64,000 nt of DNA from Bugula neritina (lineage: Eukaryota > Animalia > Bryozoa): assembly GCA_964035545.1 (NCBI GenBank), contig OZ037772.1:3129538-3193537 (forward strand), written 5' to 3'. The translations under genes were made by a program, and so were the position numbers. A model generated the notes under the pieces. That model was not told the DNA's origin, made no database searches, and worked only from the letters and a program-made list of their open reading frames with translations. This document shows positions 431-14,165 of the stretch, in pieces. Within the stretch, counting starts at the first letter, position 1; every line of letters begins with the position of its first letter.

Positions 431-995
431 GTCTTCTTGGGTTAGGCAAATTTTCAACTTCCGCGCTGGGATGAAAACTCAACTAATTTTATTTTCAAAG
501 CTCACGTTTAAGGAACTACAGTGCAAGCAAAAATTATCTAATATCGATGCTTAAAAACAAAAAGAAAACCTATCCATTTCAATTCAACTAATGCCTTGGG
601 CTTGTAGCTTACTCAATGTTGCCTAACAATTCACAACATCCGCTGCGTCTTTATTGTTAGCTAGGGAACCAAAAATCCGAACGACCTACATGACGTTTTT
701 CAGACTAGGGGGCTTGTTTCTTGTGTTATGTATTATAATCTTTTCCACCGATTTTCTCAATTTGTTTTTATGACCATGGGCAAGGCCAAGGTTTCTCCCG
801 CGGATCTGCAGCAAAAATGAAGAGGATTGTTGTGAAACAGAAGTTGCATTTGTGTAGTTTATCATTAATATTATTATTAATGATATTAGTTATTGATAAT
901 ATTAATTATTATTAATAATTTCTTGAATTTTATACTCATAATGATATGATTATGTCTATTTATTATTATATCCATATAATTACCATAATATCAAT

Positions 996-1808
996 TGTAG
1001 CAGTAGCTGGCAGCATGTTTACATGCACGCTGTGTGTATGCGTGTGTCATAGCCCATCGTCATAGCATATTAATAGCCCCTAAACAAAACAATAAATTCC
1101 TACAACTGCGCAGCAAAAGCCACAATCAATGAATCAAGTGTATTGCAAAAGCCTAAGACAACAAATCTGCCAGAATATTTCTGTTCCCTTATTTGGAATT
1201 ACTTGGGGCTGGTGGTGCAATTTGGGTGACCAATGGGATCTGGAACACATCATTTTTGTTTATTTGTTGTTTGTGTATTATTCTGCTGCTGTTGGAAAGC
1301 ATTGGTTATACTGATCAGTTTCAATTAGTAGAGCCAAAGAGCAAGTTATACTACTTATAATTTTACATTAAACAAGATATATATTACTATCTATTGAAAC
1401 CTAAGAGCAGAAGCTGTATTATCAAGTTATCAGAGAAGTGCTAAAAGTTTGTCTGCTATTAATTTTTCTATCATTTATTGTCTTAATGCTGTAATATCGA
1501 TACATTTAGCTTATATTATATGAAGTGGTTTATAGCTGACATTATTTTTAATGAATTATTATGCAGTAATATTTTGCTTACTTTAATAATTTTTATGTGT
1601 GTTATTTCCTTACAGTTCTTATATTCTTGTACTTTATTTAGCCTTATATTGTGTGTATTTTATTTAGATTTCACGGTGTAGCTTTGTGAGCAAAAGTGTT
1701 ATAAGTTGGAATAAAATACTAATAACTACACTCACAAGACATCAGTTGAATTCCTAAACCTACTCTGATAAGCTTGCGATTACTAGCAGACCTAACAAAA
1801 CTGCTACA
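996..1808 (+). repeat. BEL/Pao 5' LTR (813 bp)
   Basis: Direct repeat of 8618-9430; three substitutions seen on manual comparison; AATAAA at 1710-1715. Confidence 0.97.
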
Positions 1809-1825
1809 GTGAAATCTTTAACGAG

Positions 1826-2021
1826 GTCCAGAGAGACACCTTGTGACGCCCCGTAGAGCCACACCTGAAATAAAGTCCAGAGAGACACCTTGTGACGCCC
1901 CGTAGAGCCACACCTAAAATAAAGTCCAGAAAGAGACACCGTGTGACGCCCCGTAGAGCCACACCTAAAATAAAGTCCAGAAAGAGACACCGTGTGACGC
2001 CCCGTAGAGCCACACCTAAAA
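1826..2021 (+). repeat. Four tandem 49-51 bp repeats in the BEL 5' leader
   Basis: Unit gtccaga(aa)gagacacc(t/g)tgtgacgccccgtagagccacacct(g/a)aaataaa starting at 1826, 1875, 1924, 1975. Confidence 0.95.
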
Positions 2022-2606
2022 CAATCATCTGAAGGGACAACTCCTGAAGCTCAATAAAGCTATAGTACAGGAGGGTACTAGAAGATAAGTACATCTGTGC
2101 ATTTTAATGACATATTTACCACAAAAGCTTTAACTTTATATTAATTTCTTGTGCAAATTGCAATTTTTATTATATGAGGAGTATTGTACCAGTGAATTTT
2201 ATCTCTTCATGAAAATATCTAGAATATTTACTATTTCTGGTATTATTTGAACTTTTAAAAAGTTTTTGTGTTTGTAAAGCTAATTAGGAATCAGTGCTTC
2301 CAACAAAGCAGCACTAATTAGTGTGGGTGGAGGTAATGATAAGTGTTCCTGCATCCTATTGGTGGTTTGAATTGTTCATTAGCTTCCATTGGTCCATTGT
2401 GGGATTGACCCAGTTGTGTGGCAAAAACCCAGCTGCAGTTGTCAGGCTTGCTAACCTAGCACGTAATTAATTATCAAAACAAACAATCAAGTGAGGTTGA
2501 GGTTATATTTACGGCCTGATCTACTGCCAATTTATTGCACATAGCAGCGCATTAGTTTTATAGCGAATGGTATTTGTAAGTTTTTGCTGTAATCAAAATT
2601 ATTCAA

Positions 2607-4655
2607 ATGGCCAAAGCAAATGTTAGCCTGCTTGATCTAGATGACTATTCCGACAAGAATCTAGCAGCTCCGCTAATACAACCAGTTAGCAACAAATCAT
2701 GTACTAGCAATGCAAAAGGTGAAATTGTGGCGCCAACCAAAACAAGGCCTGTACGCACAATTAAAGTTTCAAATCTTGGCAAAGAGAGCCAGAAAAATGA
2801 GCTGGCATTTTCACTATATGCTGCTATAAACAGAGAGCTTCGTGCTGTTGATGTTATTTTTAAAAGATGCCGTAATGATGCTTATATGTTAGATACTATT
2901 GATACTTGTGTTGCTGAAATAGAAACAAAAGCTGAGTCTATTACATCTGATTATGCTAAACTTTTGCAATTATCTGACAATAAAGTGGAAACAAAAATAG
3001 AAAAACACTTTGAGTCTTTTATTGGGGAAGTCGGTAAAATTACAGAAAAGATTCTAGAGATACGACAAGGTATGGCTATCCAAGAGGAGAAATGCAAGGA
3101 ACAGGAAGAGCTAGCAAGTAAGCAGAAATTATTGGAAGAAGAGCAGCGCAAGTTTGAAGAGTATCTGGCTGAGAGGGAAAAGGTTCAACTGGTAGAAGAA
3201 CAAGCCCGGCAACTACAAATGGCCGCCGCGGAATCCACACCACTGAACAGAAACTCAGTGAGAGATGAGAAGAATTTAGAAGTGCGCGTGATCAGAACTG
3301 ACCCGATAGACTTGTGGTCTGCCCCCGCAACACCCCCAAACACTGATGTTAAACCCCGGGACAATCTTCAATACTCAAGTGGCAATGAGAGAGCAAATCA
3401 CGCATTCAAAACTAGCCAGTCAAGTGATGATTCCATCCGCCAACTCACCAATAAGATTGCTCAGGGAATCAAACTTACAAGGAAAGCAGATATTGAACCA
3501 GATATCTTCAAGGGCAACACTTTAGAGTTTGATGATTGGGAATGTGATTTTGACAGTTACTTAACATCCATGGGCATAGAGGAAGGACCAGAAAGGTTGA
3601 GATACCTGAAGAAATATGTAGACGGCCCTGCAAAAGAATGTATTAGCGGACATTTTCTAATACGAACAGAGCATAGCTACTACAAAGCACGTCAGAAGCT
3701 GTCCTCAAGATATGGTAACAAACTCGACGTAGCTCGATCAATGAAAAACAAACTAGATAACTGGAAGAAGATTGCAACAGATGACCACCAAGCCCTTCAG
3801 AAGTACGCAGATTACTTGGAGAGCTGCAGAAACGCTATGAGCTCAGTATCAGGGTTAACTAGCCTTGATGATGAGCATACTAATGAGAAACTTGCAAGAG
3901 TACTACCCGATTGGGCACATAAAAAGTGGGTAGCCGTGGTGCACCGCCTGCAAAAAACAGAAATGCGATACCCCAAATTTTCCGAGTTCTCTTTATTTGT
4001 GGATGACTTAGCAGAAATGTGTTCTCTACCGTTGATGCAAAACACTGAAAGAAATGAGAAAAGAAGACCAAATACAAAATCATTCATGACTAACACAGCA
4101 AGCGCCCAGGAACCACGAAAGTGCCTGTACTGTCACCAAAAGGGTCATATCGTGGCTGAGTGTTTCAAGCTATGCGAGAAACCCTACAGCCAACCCATGA
4201 AATTTGTAACAAGTGAAATGCTGTGCTACATCTGTGCCCGGCCTGGCCATATGGCTACCAATTGTTTCTACAATGACAAGCAGATCTGCAGAAAGTGTAA
4301 AAGGCCTGGCCATGCTACATGCCTACACAAAACAAAAGAAGACTGGAATGAAGAGAACCAAGGAACAGAGCACAAAAGGCCTAGTAAATACGCCTCTCAA
4401 CAGCCATCATCAGTACAGCAGAGTGGTGAACACGAGATGAAAAGGAGTGACATCCAAGCCTCACCATCTAACTTTTCAACTTTACAAGTGCAGCAGAATG
4501 GCCTGACAGTCGATCGCCACCTTCAGCACAAGACAATAAAGATCAAACCAAACTCTCAAGTAAAAACACAAGAACGCCTACACATAACAAGATCTTCAAC
4601 ATGGGGATGCCTGTGTATGTGTCAACCACTGCTAATCCTAAAGCCAAGATTCTAG
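2607..4655 (+). CDS. gag: BEL/Pao Gag (coiled coil, capsid-like region, three Cys/His knuckles); frameshift to pol frame after ~4472
   Basis: CLYCHQKGHIVAEC, CYICARPGHMATNC, CRKCKRPGHATCLH; EPDIFKGNTLEFDDWECDF capsid-region motif. Confidence 0.9.
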   Translation: MAKANVSLLDLDDYSDKNLAAPLIQPVSNKSCTSNAKGEIVAPTKTRPVRTIKVSNLGKESQKNELAFSLYAAINRELRAVDVIFKRCRNDAYMLDTIDTCVAEIETKAESITSDYAKLLQLSDNKVETKIEKHFESFIGEVGKITEKILEIRQGMAIQEEKCKEQEELASKQKLLEEEQRKFEEYLAEREKVQLVEEQARQLQMAAAESTPLNRNSVRDEKNLEVRVIRTDPIDLWSAPATPPNTDVKPRDNLQYSSGNERANHAFKTSQSSDDSIRQLTNKIAQGIKLTRKADIEPDIFKGNTLEFDDWECDFDSYLTSMGIEEGPERLRYLKKYVDGPAKECISGHFLIRTEHSYYKARQKLSSRYGNKLDVARSMKNKLDNWKKIATDDHQALQKYADYLESCRNAMSSVSGLTSLDDEHTNEKLARVLPDWAHKKWVAVVHRLQKTEMRYPKFSEFSLFVDDLAEMCSLPLMQNTERNEKRRPNTKSFMTNTASAQEPRKCLYCHQKGHIVAECFKLCEKPYSQPMKFVTSEMLCYICARPGHMATNCFYNDKQICRKCKRPGHATCLHKTKEDWNEENQGTEHKRPSKYASQQPSSVQQSGEHEMKRSDIQASPSNFSTLQVQQNGLTVDRHLQHKTIKIKPNSQVKTQERLHITRSSTWGCLCMCQPLLILKPRF

Positions 4656-7600
4656 TGTATGCATTTCTTGACTCTGCATCAGATCACTCTTACATAACAA
4701 AAGACTTAGCCAAAAAGCTGAAACCACGACAGCTTGGAAGAAAATTGGTTGAAGTAGAAACGATGATTGGTGAAGTTCAAAAGGAGGAAGTCAACATCTT
4801 TGGTGATATGCTAATTAAAGGATATTACGGCGGTGAAGTAGCTCTTTCATCTGCCTATGAATAAAACGAAATACCCAACTCCACTGGAGAATTTGCTAAT
4901 CACACGAACATACTACAGCAACCGCACCTCAGCCACTTGGCCAGTAAACTGGCACCCCCAATGGACATACCAGTAGGTCTCTTGATTGGCGCTAACTGTA
5001 CAATGGCCTCATTTCCATTGGAAGCTGTAAAAGGGGGTGATAACATGCCATACGCCCTTCGAACGGAGCTTGGCTGGGCTGTGTTTGGTGTCGCGAAAAG
5101 CTCACACACCAAACAAAAGGTTCATGCAACTTGTCTTACTTTTGACGATAATGATGACAGCTGTTTGCTCTCACAAGAAGACTACAAGTTTATTGAGATA
5201 TTAGATAGTCAAACAGCCATTAGTGAAAGCGGCAACTATATGATGCCATTGCCATTCAAGGAGCGCCCGACTCTCCCAAATAACTTTCAACAGGCAAAGA
5301 GAAGGCTAGAGGGCCTAGAGAAGCGCTTTATGAAAGACCCTGAACTGGAAGCTGATTATAAAAAATTTATGAATGAGCTACTGGAGCAAGATCTGGCTGA
5401 GCCAGTAGATGATAACAGTGGAGCAAATGGGGAAAGGTGGTACATACCACATTTTGCAGTGAAGCATCCCCAGAAGAATAAATTGAGGGTGGTGTTTGAC
5501 TGTAAGGCCTCCTACCAGGGCACATCCTTGAATGACCATCTCCTGCAAGGCCCTGACCACATGAACTCCCTTATAGGAATACTGTGCCGTTTTAGGAGAG
5601 AGTCTATAGCAATCAGCTGTGACATACAGCAAATGTTCTATAACTTTCTTGTCACATCCGATGACAGAGATTATCTCCGGTTCATTTGGCATGACCAACA
5701 TGGCCAACATCAAACCTTCAGAATGAAGGTGCATCTTTTCGGTGCAAAGTCCTCCCCTGGTGTTGCAACATATGGCTTGAGAAAAATCGCACAGGACCAC
5801 AGCTCTGTTTCCAATGCGGCCACAATGTTCATCAACCGTGACTTTTACGTCGATGATGGTATCACCAGTGTTGCCTCAGAAGGCGAAGCGATTGCTCTTA
5901 TAAATGCGGCTCGTGACATCTGCAGCAAGGGAAACTTGCGCTTACATAAGTTTGCATCTAACAGTGCAGAAGTTCTAGCAGCACTGCCAGAGTCTGAAAG
6001 ATCTGTTCAGAACAAAGAGTTAATGGAGTTACTACCTGAACAACGCACCTTGGGTTTACAATGGGCCATGGAATCAGACACGTTCAAGTTTATCAATCAA
6101 ATCCAGAACCGACAAAATACTAGACGGGGAATTCTATCAACAGTCAGTCAGTTATATGATCCACTAGGATTCCTGGCTCCATACACACTCCTAGGAAAAA
6201 ATATATTACAGCAGGTCAACAAGGCCAATCTGGATTGGGACGATCCAATTCCTGATACCTTAGCCGACAAATGGAGCAGGTGGATGGATCAGCTACCAGC
6301 CTTAGAACAAATCAGCATTCCAAGATGCTTGAAACCGAAGAATTACGGAGAAGTTGTAAGGCGTGAATTACACAACTTTTGCGATGCCAGTGAAGATGGA
6401 ATTGGTGCGTGCTCATACATACGACAAATCAACAACAAAGGCAATGTGCAAGTCTCATTCTTGATCGGAAAGTCAAGAGTAATACTATCTAAAGGACTTT
6501 TCACAATGCCTCGCTTAGAGCTTATGGGTGCTGTAATGGCTACTTATCTGAGTAAGATGCTTCACAAGGAGCTAGATATGAAGTTTGATGCAGAGTACTT
6601 TTGGTCAGACTCAGAAATTGTGCTAGGATGGATAGCCAACACCACGAAGAAATATCATCCTTTTGTCCACAATCGAGTACGGGCTATTACATCCACCACA
6701 GAAGAAAAGCAGTGGTACGATGTGCCTGGACCTTTAAATCCAGCTGACATCGCTTCTCGGGGTAAACCCTGCGATCAACTCTCCAATACAAGCTGGTTCT
6801 CAGGACCAGGCTTTCTCAAGGAGCCTACAATCACCCTTTTAAACCAAGAGCAAAATTTCATAAACAACCTTGATCCCCAAGATCCCGAGATAAAGAAAGC
6901 GAAAGTTATGCAAACCGCTATCAGACCAACTGGCATTATTGACAAATTTCTCAAGTTTTCCACCTGGTCAAAGCTTGTACGCTCTATCACAGTCATCCGA
7001 AGCATTCATCGCAATGAAAAGAAGACCTGGTGTGTTAAACCATGTTCCGCAGAGAGTCTCCATGAAGCTGAGACGAGAATTATCTCAGCCGTTCAGCAAA
7101 GCCACTACAAAGAGGACTACAGTACAGTAAAACAAGGACAGCAATTGTCAAAATCTAAACCTCTTGCTAACCTTAACCCATTCATTGATGGAGCCGGCAT
7201 TATGCGTGTAGGTGGGAGGTTGCAGAGATCACAGGTGCTCAGCTATGAAGAGAAGCACCCCATAATTCTCCCTCGTGATGCACATGTAACGTCTCTAATA
7301 GTCCGGCACTATCACAACAGCATTTATCACCTAGGGAGAACATCTACACTAAGTGCAATTAGAACTGCAGGGTACTGGATTGTCGGAGCCACAAGACTTG
7401 TGAAGTCTATGTTGAGCAAATGTGTCACCTGCAACAGGCTGCGTGGCAAGCCTATTACTCAAATCATGTCAATGCTACCCACAGAAAGACTAAATCCAAC
7501 ACCACCATTTACAAATATAGGCATAGACTGCTTTGGACCCTTTACCGTTAAAGACAGGCGGTCAGAAGTGAAAAGATGGGGCCTCCTTGTCACGTGCATG

Positions 7601-8422
7601 TACTCCCGAGCTGTGCATATAGAGTTGTTGCCGGATATGACAACAGATTCATTTCTGAACGCTTTAAGAACACTGATCTGCATCAGAGGAGCAATAAATA
7701 TGATTTACTGTGACAGAGGGACCAACTTTGTTGGAGCTGACAACGAGCTCACAAGAGAACTCCATGCGATGGACCAAGGGTCATCTGCACTAACAACATT
7801 TTTAAAGGAAAATCGAATCACCTTCCAGTTCAACGCGCCATATTCGAGCCATGCTGGGGGTGTTTGGGAACGCCAAATTCGTAGTGTATGATCTGTATTG
7901 GAAGGTATGAAATCTACAGGTAAGTACAACAGGCTGGATACACCGGGGCTCCGTACTGCCTTCTATGAGGCAATGGCTACGGTCAATAGCCGACCATTGG
8001 CGATAAACAGCTTGAGCGATCCTGAGGCACCTATACTCACTCCAAATCATCTACTCACATCAAAATCAAGACAGATAGGACCCCCACCAGGAAAGTTTGA
8101 GACCACGGAGATCTATGGAAGAAAAATGTGGAGAAAGGCTCAACAGCTTGCTGAAGAATTCTGGAGACTATGGAAAGTTGAATACATGCAGCAGATTACA
8201 AAGCGACAAAGGTGGGAGAACCAAACACGTGATGTTCATACAGGAGATCTAGTCATGCTTATAGAAGAGAACGTATTGCGAAATGAATGGCCCTATGGAT
8301 TGGTCAAGAAAACGTTGAGAAGTGCTGATGGCAGGGTCAGAAGAGTGAAAGTAAAGACTAACGCTGGGACAACACTAGAGCGTCCGATACAGAAGCTAGT
8401 GCTGCTACAGGAGCAAGAGTAG
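4472..8422 (+). pseudogene. pol: BEL/Pao pol (aspartic protease, RT, RNase H, integrase) interrupted by in-frame stops at 4862-4864 and 7889-7891
   Basis: ORFs 4601-4864 (FLDSASDHSYI protease), 4937-7891 (RT YVDD, RH, IN HHCC and DD) and 7898-8422 (IN C-terminus) are all in one frame, which opens at 4472. Confidence 0.93.
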
Positions 8423-8607
8423 TTATAGTAGCTAGCGACATCCAACTGCCACTGTATGAGGATTACAGTGCATAGTTATAATATCCATATTTTACAATAG
8501 CCATTATATAGTTTCATGTTATTTTTATAAAAAAAAAAAAAAAAAATGAAATAAATAAATAAAAGCTAAAATAAAATTGTAAATTCTCTTTTAATTTTTG
8601 TAAAATT

Positions 8608-8617
8608 AAGGTGGGAG
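8608..8617 (+). promoter_or_regulatory. Polypurine tract of BEL element
   Basis: AAGGTGGGAG directly abutting the 3' LTR. Confidence 0.8.
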
Positions 8618-9430
8618 TGTAGCAGTAGCTGGCAGCATGTTTACATGCACGCTGTGTGTATGCGTGTGTCATAGTCCATCGTCATAGCATATTAATAGCC
8701 CCTAAACAAAACAATAAATTCCTACAACTGCGCAGCAAAAGCCACAATCAATGAATCAAGTGTATTGCAAAAGCCTAAGACAACAAATCTGCCAGAATAT
8801 TTCTGTTCCCTTATTTGGAATTACTTGGGGCTGGTGGTGCAATTTGGGTGACCAATGGGATCTGGAACACATCATTTTTGTTTATTTGTTGTTTGTGTAT
8901 TATTCTGCTGCTGTTGGAAAGCATTGGTTATCCTGATCAGTTTCAATTAGTAGAGCCAAAGAGCAAGTTATACTACTTATAATTTTACATTAAACAAGAT
9001 ATATATTACTATCTATTGAAACCTAAGAGCAGAAGCTGTATTATCAAGTTATCAGAGAAGTGCTAAAAGTTTGTCTGCTATTAATTTTTCTATCATTTAT
9101 TGTCTTAATGCTGTAATATCGATACATTTAGCTTATATTATATGAAGTGGTTTATAGCTGACATTATTTTTAATGAATTATTATGCAGTAATATTTTGCT
9201 TACTTTAATAATTTTTATGTGTGTTATTTCCTTACAGTTCTTATATTCTTGTACTTTATTTAGCCTTATATTGTGTGTATTTTATTTAGATTTCACGGTG
9301 TAGCTTTGTGAGCAAAAGTGTTATAAGTTGGAATAAAATACTAATAACTACACTCACAAGACATCAGTTGAATTCCTAAACCTACTCTGATAAGCTTGCG
9401 GTTACTAGCAGACCTAACAAAACTGCTACA
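8618..9430 (+). repeat. BEL/Pao 3' LTR (813 bp)
   Basis: Direct repeat of 996-1808, followed by TSD TCAAT. Confidence 0.97.
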
Positions 9431-9462
9431 TCAATTATAATGATAATCATAATCATAATGAT

Positions 9463-12988: not shown

Positions 12989-13143
12989 GTGGGAGTGGCT
13001 TGGGTAGATGTGGGCGGAGTTGAACACAGGTTCCGGTGCGATGCGGAAGGAAACAGATATGGTGTGAATGACGACGAGTATTTAACTTTCAACCAGATGG
13101 AGTACTTGAATCAGGATAACCAATTAGTGTATGCTAACATCAG
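12989..13143 (+). other. Orphan exon-like segment of unknown protein
   Basis: ttgacag acceptor, open frame VGVAWVDVGGVEHRFRCDAEG...YANIR, possible AG|GT donor at 13143. Confidence 0.45.
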
Positions 13144-13150
13144 GTGTGTT

Positions 13151-13990
13151 ACTACTAGTAATACACATGATACTACTAGTAATACACATGATAATACTAG
13201 TAATACACATGATAATACTAGTAATACACATGATAATACTAGTAATACACATAACAATACTAGTAACACACATGATAATACTAGTGATACACATGATATT
13301 ACTAGTAATACACATGATGATACTAGTAATACACATGATAATACTAGTAATACACATGATAATACTAGTGATACACATGATAATACTAGTGATACACATG
13401 ATAATACTAGTAATACATATGATAATACTAGTAATACACATGATACTACACGTAATACACATGATAATACTAGTAATACACATGATAATACTAGTAATAC
13501 ACATGATAATACTAGTAATACACATGATAATACAAGTAATACATATGATAATACTAGTAATACACATGATAATACTAGTAATACACATGATAATACTAGT
13601 AATACACATGATAATACTAGTAATACATATGATGATACTAGTAATACACATGATAATACTAGTAACACACATGATAATACTAGTAATACACATGATACTA
13701 CTAGTAACACACATGATAATACTAGTAATACATATGATAATACTAGTAATACACATGATAATACTAGTAATACACATGATACTACTAGTAATACATATGA
13801 TAATACTAGTAATACACATAACAATACTAGTAACACACATGATAGTACTAGTAACACACATGATACTACTAGTAATACACATGATATTACTAGTAATACA
13901 CATGATAATACTAGTAATACACATGATAATACTAGTCATACACATGATAATACTAGTAATACACATGATAATACTAGTAATACAGATGAT
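13151..13990. repeat. 21-bp minisatellite (actagtaatacacatgataat), ~40 copies
   Basis: Direct reading; stop-free in several frames (TSNTHDN)n. Confidence 0.97.
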
Positions 13991-14165
13991 AGGGCTAATA
14001 ATAAATATTATGTCCAAAGCTTGAGGAGAAATCTGTGAACAAGTCAACAGTAGACATTGTGACATCCTTGGCAATTAAAATAACAAACTTCTTTATACCA
14101 ACACTAGCTTGTTCTATTCTACTTTGAATACCCATATTATGAATATCTGACGTATGTTTTATCAG

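Follow-up and report, generated by a model that had tools for sequence, protein, structure and literature searches.

Long terminal repeat (LTR) retrotransposons that prime reverse transcription with their own RNA are best described in the Tf1/sushi group of Ty3/gypsy chromoviruses. Tf1 and Tf2 of Schizosaccharomyces pombe lack a tRNA-type primer-binding site (PBS) and instead pair about 11 nucleotides (nt) of their own R region with the sequence past the LTR, and RNase H of Tf1 cuts the self-primer between bases 11 and 12 (PMC7175516, PMC5341516). Self-primers have also been predicted, from complementarity alone, in the plant and fungal lineages Tcn1 (Ty3/gypsy) and TAR (Ty1/copia) (PMC6317226), none of which belongs to BEL/Pao and for none of which an intron in the primer has been reported. 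A PBS without the initial TGG is likewise found in the half-tRNA-primed elements copia, Ty5, Bianca, and Osser, where it matches internal parts of tRNA-Met or tRNA-Ile (PMC6317226). For the BEL/Pao superfamily, the ICTV 2021 profile describes the Belpaoviridae as tRNA primed, with an 18-nt PBS for tRNA-Arg or tRNA-Gly (PMC8742986), and neither the main BEL/Pao survey nor the Sinbad paper mentions a PBS. The open full-text literature, a search scope outside of which subscription journals fall, returned nothing that links self-priming or an LTR intron to BEL/Pao, in agreement with the suspicion voiced in the preliminary description of this locus that self-priming was undescribed in the superfamily.

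The element analyzed here occupies positions 996 to 9430 of a 64,000-nt stretch of the Bugula neritina genome (contig OZ037772.1, positions 3,129,538 to 3,193,537), referred to below as the window. Its features are as follows, all on the plus strand.

991-995, plus strand: target-site duplication TCAAT, 5' copy; the identical 5-mer at 9431-9435 also lies directly beside the LTRs
996-1808, plus strand: 5' LTR, 813 bp, with TG..CA ends and the terminal inverted repeat TGTAGC/GCTACA
1442-1446, plus strand: end of LTR exon 1; both LTRs of the window copy have TAAAA here, and nearly all sister copies have TAAAG
1447-1667, plus strand: GT-AG intron inside the LTR, 221 nt; the donor is GTTTGT, and the acceptor AG (1666-1667) follows a stretch rich in pyrimidines
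1668-1674, plus strand: first bases of LTR exon 2, ATTTCAC, which would form the 3' portion of the candidate self-primer and are the exact complement of 1809-1815
1710-1715, plus strand: AATAAA polyadenylation signal, 43 nt past the acceptor
1809-1820, plus strand: PBS, GTGAAATCTTTA, beginning at the first base past the LTR
1832-2021, plus strand: 3.8 tandem copies of a 51-bp repeat, located in the leader directly past the PBS
2607-4655, plus strand: gag open reading frame, with DUF1759 and zf-CCHC (Pfam)
4937-7891, plus strand: pol open reading frame piece, with RVT_1, Peptidase_A17/Pao, Integrase_H2C2, and rve (Pfam)
7898-8422, plus strand: integrase C-terminal piece, with DUF5641, separated from pol by a stop in the window copy
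8608-8617, plus strand: polypurine tract, AAGGTGGGAG, directly before the 3' LTR
8618-9430, plus strand: 3' LTR, with the same intron at 9069-9289 and the same primer halves
9431-9435, plus strand: target-site duplication TCAAT, 3' copy

Both the LTR anatomy and the Pfam domains identify the element as a BEL/Pao LTR retrotransposon, as the preliminary description had proposed. The LTRs are paired, have TG..CA ends, and are accompanied by a target-site duplication and a polypurine tract; Gag carries DUF1759 and a zinc knuckle, and Pol carries reverse transcriptase, Peptidase_A17 (Pao), the integrase core, and DUF5641. Among named proteins, the closest are of the BEL/Pao type and come from Watersipora subatra (66% identity). 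The Pol profile in Pfam is that of Pao/BEL and not of gypsy, which places the element in a superfamily different from that of the Tf1/sushi clade. In its gag-pol organization, domains, LTRs, and polypurine tract, the element matches the Belpaoviridae as described by the ICTV (PMC8742986); the tRNA PBS of that description is what it lacks. A direct-repeat search and a position-by-position comparison found 3 mismatches between the two LTRs over 813 bp. The frame of the window copy is broken between 4655 and 4937 and carries a further stop at 7889-7891, and sister copies in the same genome have a single open frame of 1,953 amino acids. Most related elements have the polypurine motif GGTGGGAG or GGGGGGAG in front of their 3' LTR, and this motif differs in the J family, family E, Patella, Actinostola, and Lineus; an AAUAAA-type signal shortly past the acceptor is likewise present in most related LTRs.

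Several observations concern the element and its surroundings more broadly. The 51-bp leader repeat has an analog in a copy of family A (L037), with the common core CGTAGAGCC, and such repeats may be a conserved packaging or Gag-binding signal. Contigs of sequencing runs X1, X2, and X4 have a second joint, at 4627-5069, that skips 441 nt in frame from the end of gag to the start of pol; the ends of the skipped segment are AC..AG, which is not a canonical intron, and the skip could reflect a deletion subfamily or unusual processing. Elsewhere in the window, a tandem array with a 21-nt period and at least 40 units (13021-14100) and microsatellite-like repeats of the ATCACT type (1-430) are unrelated to the element.

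Directly past the 5' LTR, where a tRNA-type PBS would show TGG, no TGG is present. Instead, GTGAAATCT (1809-1817) and the LTR-internal AGATTTCAC (1666-1674) are exact reverse complements, so that the bases after the LTR can pair with RNA of the element's own LTR, as first pointed out in the preliminary description. All bases on which that description relied are located where it had placed them (1666-1674, the GG at 1675-1676, 1677-1682, 1803-1808, 1809-1817, 1635-1640, and 1710-1715). Within the 216-Mb genome, roughly 8 full-length copies and another 25 or so LTR copies retain both halves of the complement, and the PBS at 1809-1820 is kept in all full-length copies. A second stem, between TGTAGC and GCTACA, was also part of the original proposal; it exists in the window's family and is not conserved elsewhere, some elements keeping TGT/ACA only. 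At 996-1001, the motif TGTAGC also forms the terminal inverted repeat of the LTR itself.

LTR ends of related families were collected from the same genome (62%, about 47%, and about 30% Pol identity to the window element), and elements in other species were located by protein homology search followed by retrieval of the encoding contigs. Sister families have an exact unspliced complement of 8 to 9 nt at offset 0, that is, from the first base past the LTR, with the LTR-internal site lying 88 to 180 nt upstream. Base changes between families are compensated between the LTR site and the post-LTR site, as the following pairs show.

Family A: LTR site AGACTTCAC, post-LTR site GTGAAGTCT
Families B and E: LTR site AGTTTTTAC, post-LTR site GTAAAAACT
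Family F: LTR site AGTTTTCAC, post-LTR site GTGAAAACT
Family D: LTR site AGTTTCAC, post-LTR site GTGAAACT
Danio rerio and Patella vulgata: LTR site AGTTTTCAC, post-LTR site GTGAAAACT
Xenopus laevis: LTR site AGTTCCAC, post-LTR site GTGGAACT
Watersipora subatra: both 9-mers identical to those of the window

The unspliced complement is weaker in Actinostola, at 7 nt, and in an old copy from Lineus, where 8 of 9 nt match; the LTRs of this Lineus copy are 94.6% alike, and it retains AGATTCCAC in the 3' LTR only. Family C, known from a single copy, has an imperfect site (GT AA GAAACT versus AGTTTCAC), and no LTR pair was obtained at a Lingula locus. A 9-nt complement of the sequence at offset 0 is present in the own LTR of 9 of the 14 related elements, compared to 0.55% of controls, for which 9-mers located 10 to 190 nt further downstream were taken and their complement was sought in the same LTR. 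The 9-nt complement is thus in excess of chance.

The preliminary description took A1666 as the transcript start, so that the first 9 nt of the unspliced RNA would serve as the primer and be cut free at the GG bulge. The exact 9-nt complement in the unspliced DNA of most families would agree with this, the T-rich/AG context fits a loose initiator consensus, and an AT-rich stretch lies about 30 nt upstream. However, the same context, a pyrimidine tract followed by AG, is that of a canonical splice acceptor. In every family, the complement starts with AG after a pyrimidine-rich stretch (for example, tttatttAG, tacttccAG, and ttatttcAG), and AG 1666-1667 is the 3' splice site of an intron. The donor reads GCTAAAG/GTTTGT in nearly all sister LTRs and GCTAAAA/GTTTGT in the window (1446/1447); together with the acceptor at 1667/1668, this delimits an intron of exactly 221 nt that has the GT..AG ends and the pyrimidine tract before AG of spliceosomal introns. 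The TATA-like TATTTA at 1635-1640, earlier noted about 30 nt upstream of the supposed start, is present, but it lies inside this intron. A 26-nt tandem duplication at the 3' end of the intron (1618-1667) has created a second tatttAG motif at 1636-1642.

The joined form is also present in RNA. Contigs of two runs, X2 (library type RNA-Seq) and X3, have a 221-nt skip with its joint placed from 1444 to 1666, and the same joint occurs as a loose end in run X1. These run data are assembled contigs rather than raw reads, and X2 is the only run recorded as RNA-Seq, the others being RNA by our guess. The acceptor AG mimics the AG that ends exon 1 in sister copies, and this identity explains why the aligner put the joint at 1444/1666 rather than at the donor. 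Two other interpretations of these contigs were set aside: an aberrant strand transfer for the 1444-to-1666 joint, abandoned after sister copies had revealed the canonical donor, and a reading of the contig ends at 1445, 1666, and 1808 as RNA ends, which are explained by graph branch points. A junction search of the genome DNA found no copy of the splice junction of the window's family. Introns homologous to that of the window are present in 11 other elements. Collectively, these observations show that the LTR contains an intron and that it is spliced.

Splicing lengthens the complement. In sister copies, the junction TAAAG^ATTTCAC is the exact 12-nt complement of 1809-1820, the 5 nt contributed by exon 1 (1442-1446) being the complement of PBS bases 1816-1820. 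The sequence directly 3' of the 5' LTR is therefore complementary to the element's own R, as in Tf1-type elements, over 9 nt in the unspliced form and 12 nt in the spliced form. The window copy itself departs from this pattern: both of its LTRs have A at 1446, where nearly all other copies have G, so that its spliced junction would pair over only 7+4 nt with one mismatch. The preliminary description had conceded that tttag at 1663-1667 might be just a splice acceptor with coincidental pairing. The acceptor is real, but the pairing is not coincidental, and the junction extends the complement.

Intron-less LTRs, lacking exactly the predicted intron, occur as DNA copies in families J, D, and B (loci G000:C2:24646470-24646791 [L096], C6 [L098], C3:6955699-6956317 [L100], and C1 [L101]) and are 98 to 99% (J and D) or 90 to 98% (B) identical to the intron-bearing LTRs. 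The family J junction is present at 18 genome sites, several of them paired 4.7 to 5.6 kb apart. Among four fetched LTRs of this family, the three closest are about 99% identical to the intron-bearing LTR minus a 129-nt GT..AG segment, and two of these three are 5' LTRs followed by the same PBS as in the intron-bearing copy. Family D has 16 junction sites, including both LTRs of a copy with an open frame of 2,105 amino acids, and family B has 3. The same junction search found no intron-less copies in family F, family E, or the window's family. The intron-less LTRs are retro-copies of spliced RNA. In family D, the match between PBS and primer is 12 nt in the copy with intron-less LTRs and 11 nt in the intron-bearing copy, as would be expected if the PBS had been recopied from the primer. 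A different kind of loss was observed in family A, where the 3' LTR of copy L037 (G000:C2:1813300-1823299, minus strand) lacks 334 nt of the 5' LTR, including the donor, the intron, and the primer; the direct repeat TAAAGTGTT bounds this segment, which indicates a deletion and not a splice.

The split complement was then sought across families and species by taking every GT..AG pair 40 to 600 nt apart in each LTR and requiring that the complement of the junction begin at the first post-LTR base. A junction complement of 11 to 13 nt was recovered in 12 of the 14 elements, comprising seven Bugula neritina families and the elements of Watersipora, Danio, Xenopus, Patella, and Actinostola, each with a single best intron of 78 to 290 nt. 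Family C and the old Lineus copy, the latter with no donor found, are not a clean fit. The contiguous complement reaches 13 nt in families A, B, and E; 12 nt in families F and J, the window's sister copy, Watersipora, and Danio; and 11 nt in family D, Patella, Actinostola, and Xenopus. At control offsets (155 per element), at least 11 nt were reached in 8 of 2,170 cases, several of which are leaders with repeated sequence, and family D has a visible second PBS-like copy. In the leader of one family D element (L042), two instances of the PBS-like GTGAAACTCTT, separated by 27 nt, lie past the 5' LTR.

When the primers are lined up with the PBS from their 3' ends, positions 1 to 11 form Watson-Crick pairs in all 132 of 132 cells, and 9 of these 11 positions show two or more pair types, the covariation for which the preliminary description had suggested looking in related families. 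Position 12 pairs in 9 of the 12 elements and position 13 at chance level. In all of these elements the 3' end of the primer lies flush with the boundary between LTR and PBS, and in 10 of the 12 it is followed by G. The complementarity of junction and PBS, its position, its conservation, and its covariation hold across two deep BEL/Pao lineages. As judged from sequence, the layout extends from a sea anemone (Cnidaria) through Bryozoa and Mollusca to fish and amphibians, the latter represented by a frog; a partial match comes from the old, decayed copy in Lineus (Nemertea).

These comparisons also weigh against a primer formed by the first 9 nt of an unspliced RNA. The upstream donors lengthen the complement by 4 to 7 nt in 12 of the 14 elements. 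In family J (30% Pol identity), the unspliced complement is only GGTAC, leaving a primer of 5 nt, and the spliced CAATATT^GGTAC provides 12 nt. The unspliced Actinostola complement would be mismatched at its first base, and the junction removes this mismatch to give 11 nt. With the splice seen both in RNA contigs and as intron-less DNA, we regard a transcript start at 1666 as very unlikely, and the 9-nt primer first proposed gives way to a candidate spliced one of 12 nt in the sister copies and 11 to 13 nt in the other families.

A host tRNA half or fragment ending in ...TTTCAC-3', used as in copia and Ty5, would be another source of the primer, its likeness to the LTR then being incidental. 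In favor of this, bryozoan, fish, and limpet elements have the PBS GTGAAAACT in common, and the core TTTTCAC is presumably similar to the anticodon loop of tRNA-Glu(UUC). The longest match of the window PBS region to host tRNAs is 6 nt among 42 distinct tRNAs, a partial set that lacks nuclear Glu, Gly, Asp, and Leu genes, among others, because the Rfam scan of the genome scored 63 of 18,702 candidates. The earlier conclusion that the element has no tRNA-type PBS holds within this set, as does the absence of the 18-nt PBS for a tRNA 3' end given by the ICTV, a trait that describes the family rather than defines it. The 9-mer combined with a T-loop motif matched the genome 29 times, as did the reversed control (29 matches), placing the 9-mer in a tRNA context at chance level, and no anticodon-arm fit was found among the matches looked at. 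A dense cluster of 13 AT-rich tRNA genes on a 65-kb contig (G000:C214:41100-45400; L058) looks organellar or bacterial rather than nuclear. The covariation decides against a tRNA primer: nine or more primer/PBS variants are each an exact match to the exons of their own LTR, including the exon 1 bases that differ between families. We consider a tRNA fragment extremely improbable as the primer, and the window PBS, in contrast to those of copia, Ty5, Bianca, and Osser, matches the element's own LTR.

Tf1-like self-priming is the best explanation of a PBS that is not of the tRNA type, pairs with the element's own LTR RNA, and is conserved and covarying in this pairing. We therefore hypothesize that the element primes reverse transcription with its own RNA as Tf1 does, with a primer assembled by splicing, and we hold this to be probable. 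Transcription would start inside the LTR, upstream of 1446, and the 221-nt intron at 1447-1667 would be removed from the LTR RNA. The junction TAAAG^ATTTCAC of the sister copies would then fold back onto 1809-1820, and, by analogy with Tf1, the element's RNase H would cut after the last C of the primer (1674), leaving a 3' end that reverse transcriptase could extend into U5. Priming may take place in cis or in trans. Such an extension would account for the exact coincidence of the LTR end with the start of the pairing. For the predicted release of the primer 3'-OH by RNase H, the only support, and an indirect one, comes from the exact end of the duplex at the LTR/U5 border and from the G that follows in 10 of 12 elements. 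The analogy with Tf1 is incomplete, which counts against this explanation: with a complement that crosses from one exon to the next, exon 1 bases must lie upstream, and the primer would not be the capped 5' end of the RNA, unlike the primer of Tf1. It is also interrupted in the DNA by an intron of 78 to 290 nt.

The junction and the PBS might instead pair for another purpose, such as leader folding for packaging, dimerization, or translation control, with another primer acting in reverse transcription. The helix is missing from some predicted folds. With an arbitrary 30-nt exon 1, minimum-free-energy folds contain the primer:PBS helix in 4 of 12 elements, and forcing it in four others cost 2 to 9 kcal/mol under the same assumed exon 1, so that folding weighs neither for the self-priming model nor against it. 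However, the duplex starts in every element at the first post-U5 base, the defining position of a PBS; the element offers no other PBS; and the 12-nt match in the intron-less copy of family D, versus 11 nt in the intron-bearing copy, fits recopying of a PBS. We regard such another role as unlikely and favor self-priming by the spliced junction.

Self-priming through a spliced junction would have consequences for the two LTRs of a single RNA. The intron copy in the 3' R region would have to escape splicing if an intron-bearing LTR is to be rebuilt, and a spliced 3' R template would yield intron-less LTRs. More tentatively, and with somewhat less than even confidence, we propose that splicing is an obligatory license for reverse transcription in an ancient BEL/Pao lineage spanning animal phyla, and that replication would depend either on one RNA having its two identical introns spliced asymmetrically or on a spliced RNA that primes an unspliced one in trans. 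In Tf2, RNA processing likewise decides whether a transcript bears a usable self-primer, through an alternative start site (PMC5341516); the switch in BEL/Pao would be splicing.

Self-priming is established in the Tf1/sushi group and predicted in a copia lineage, and BEL/Pao would be the third LTR superfamily in which it occurs. A large BEL/Pao assemblage lacks a tRNA site and has a complement of its own LTR instead, and PBS finders based on tRNAs would miss the PBS in these elements, which the split primer explains. What appears to be new is a primer split by a conserved intron inside the LTR, for which we found no report in the open literature searched. The intron-less LTR copies are a DNA record of past splicing and provide natural intron-less variants. 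Such a primer would tie retrotransposition to the host spliceosome, and it raises the question of how two copies of one intron are treated differently within a single genomic RNA.
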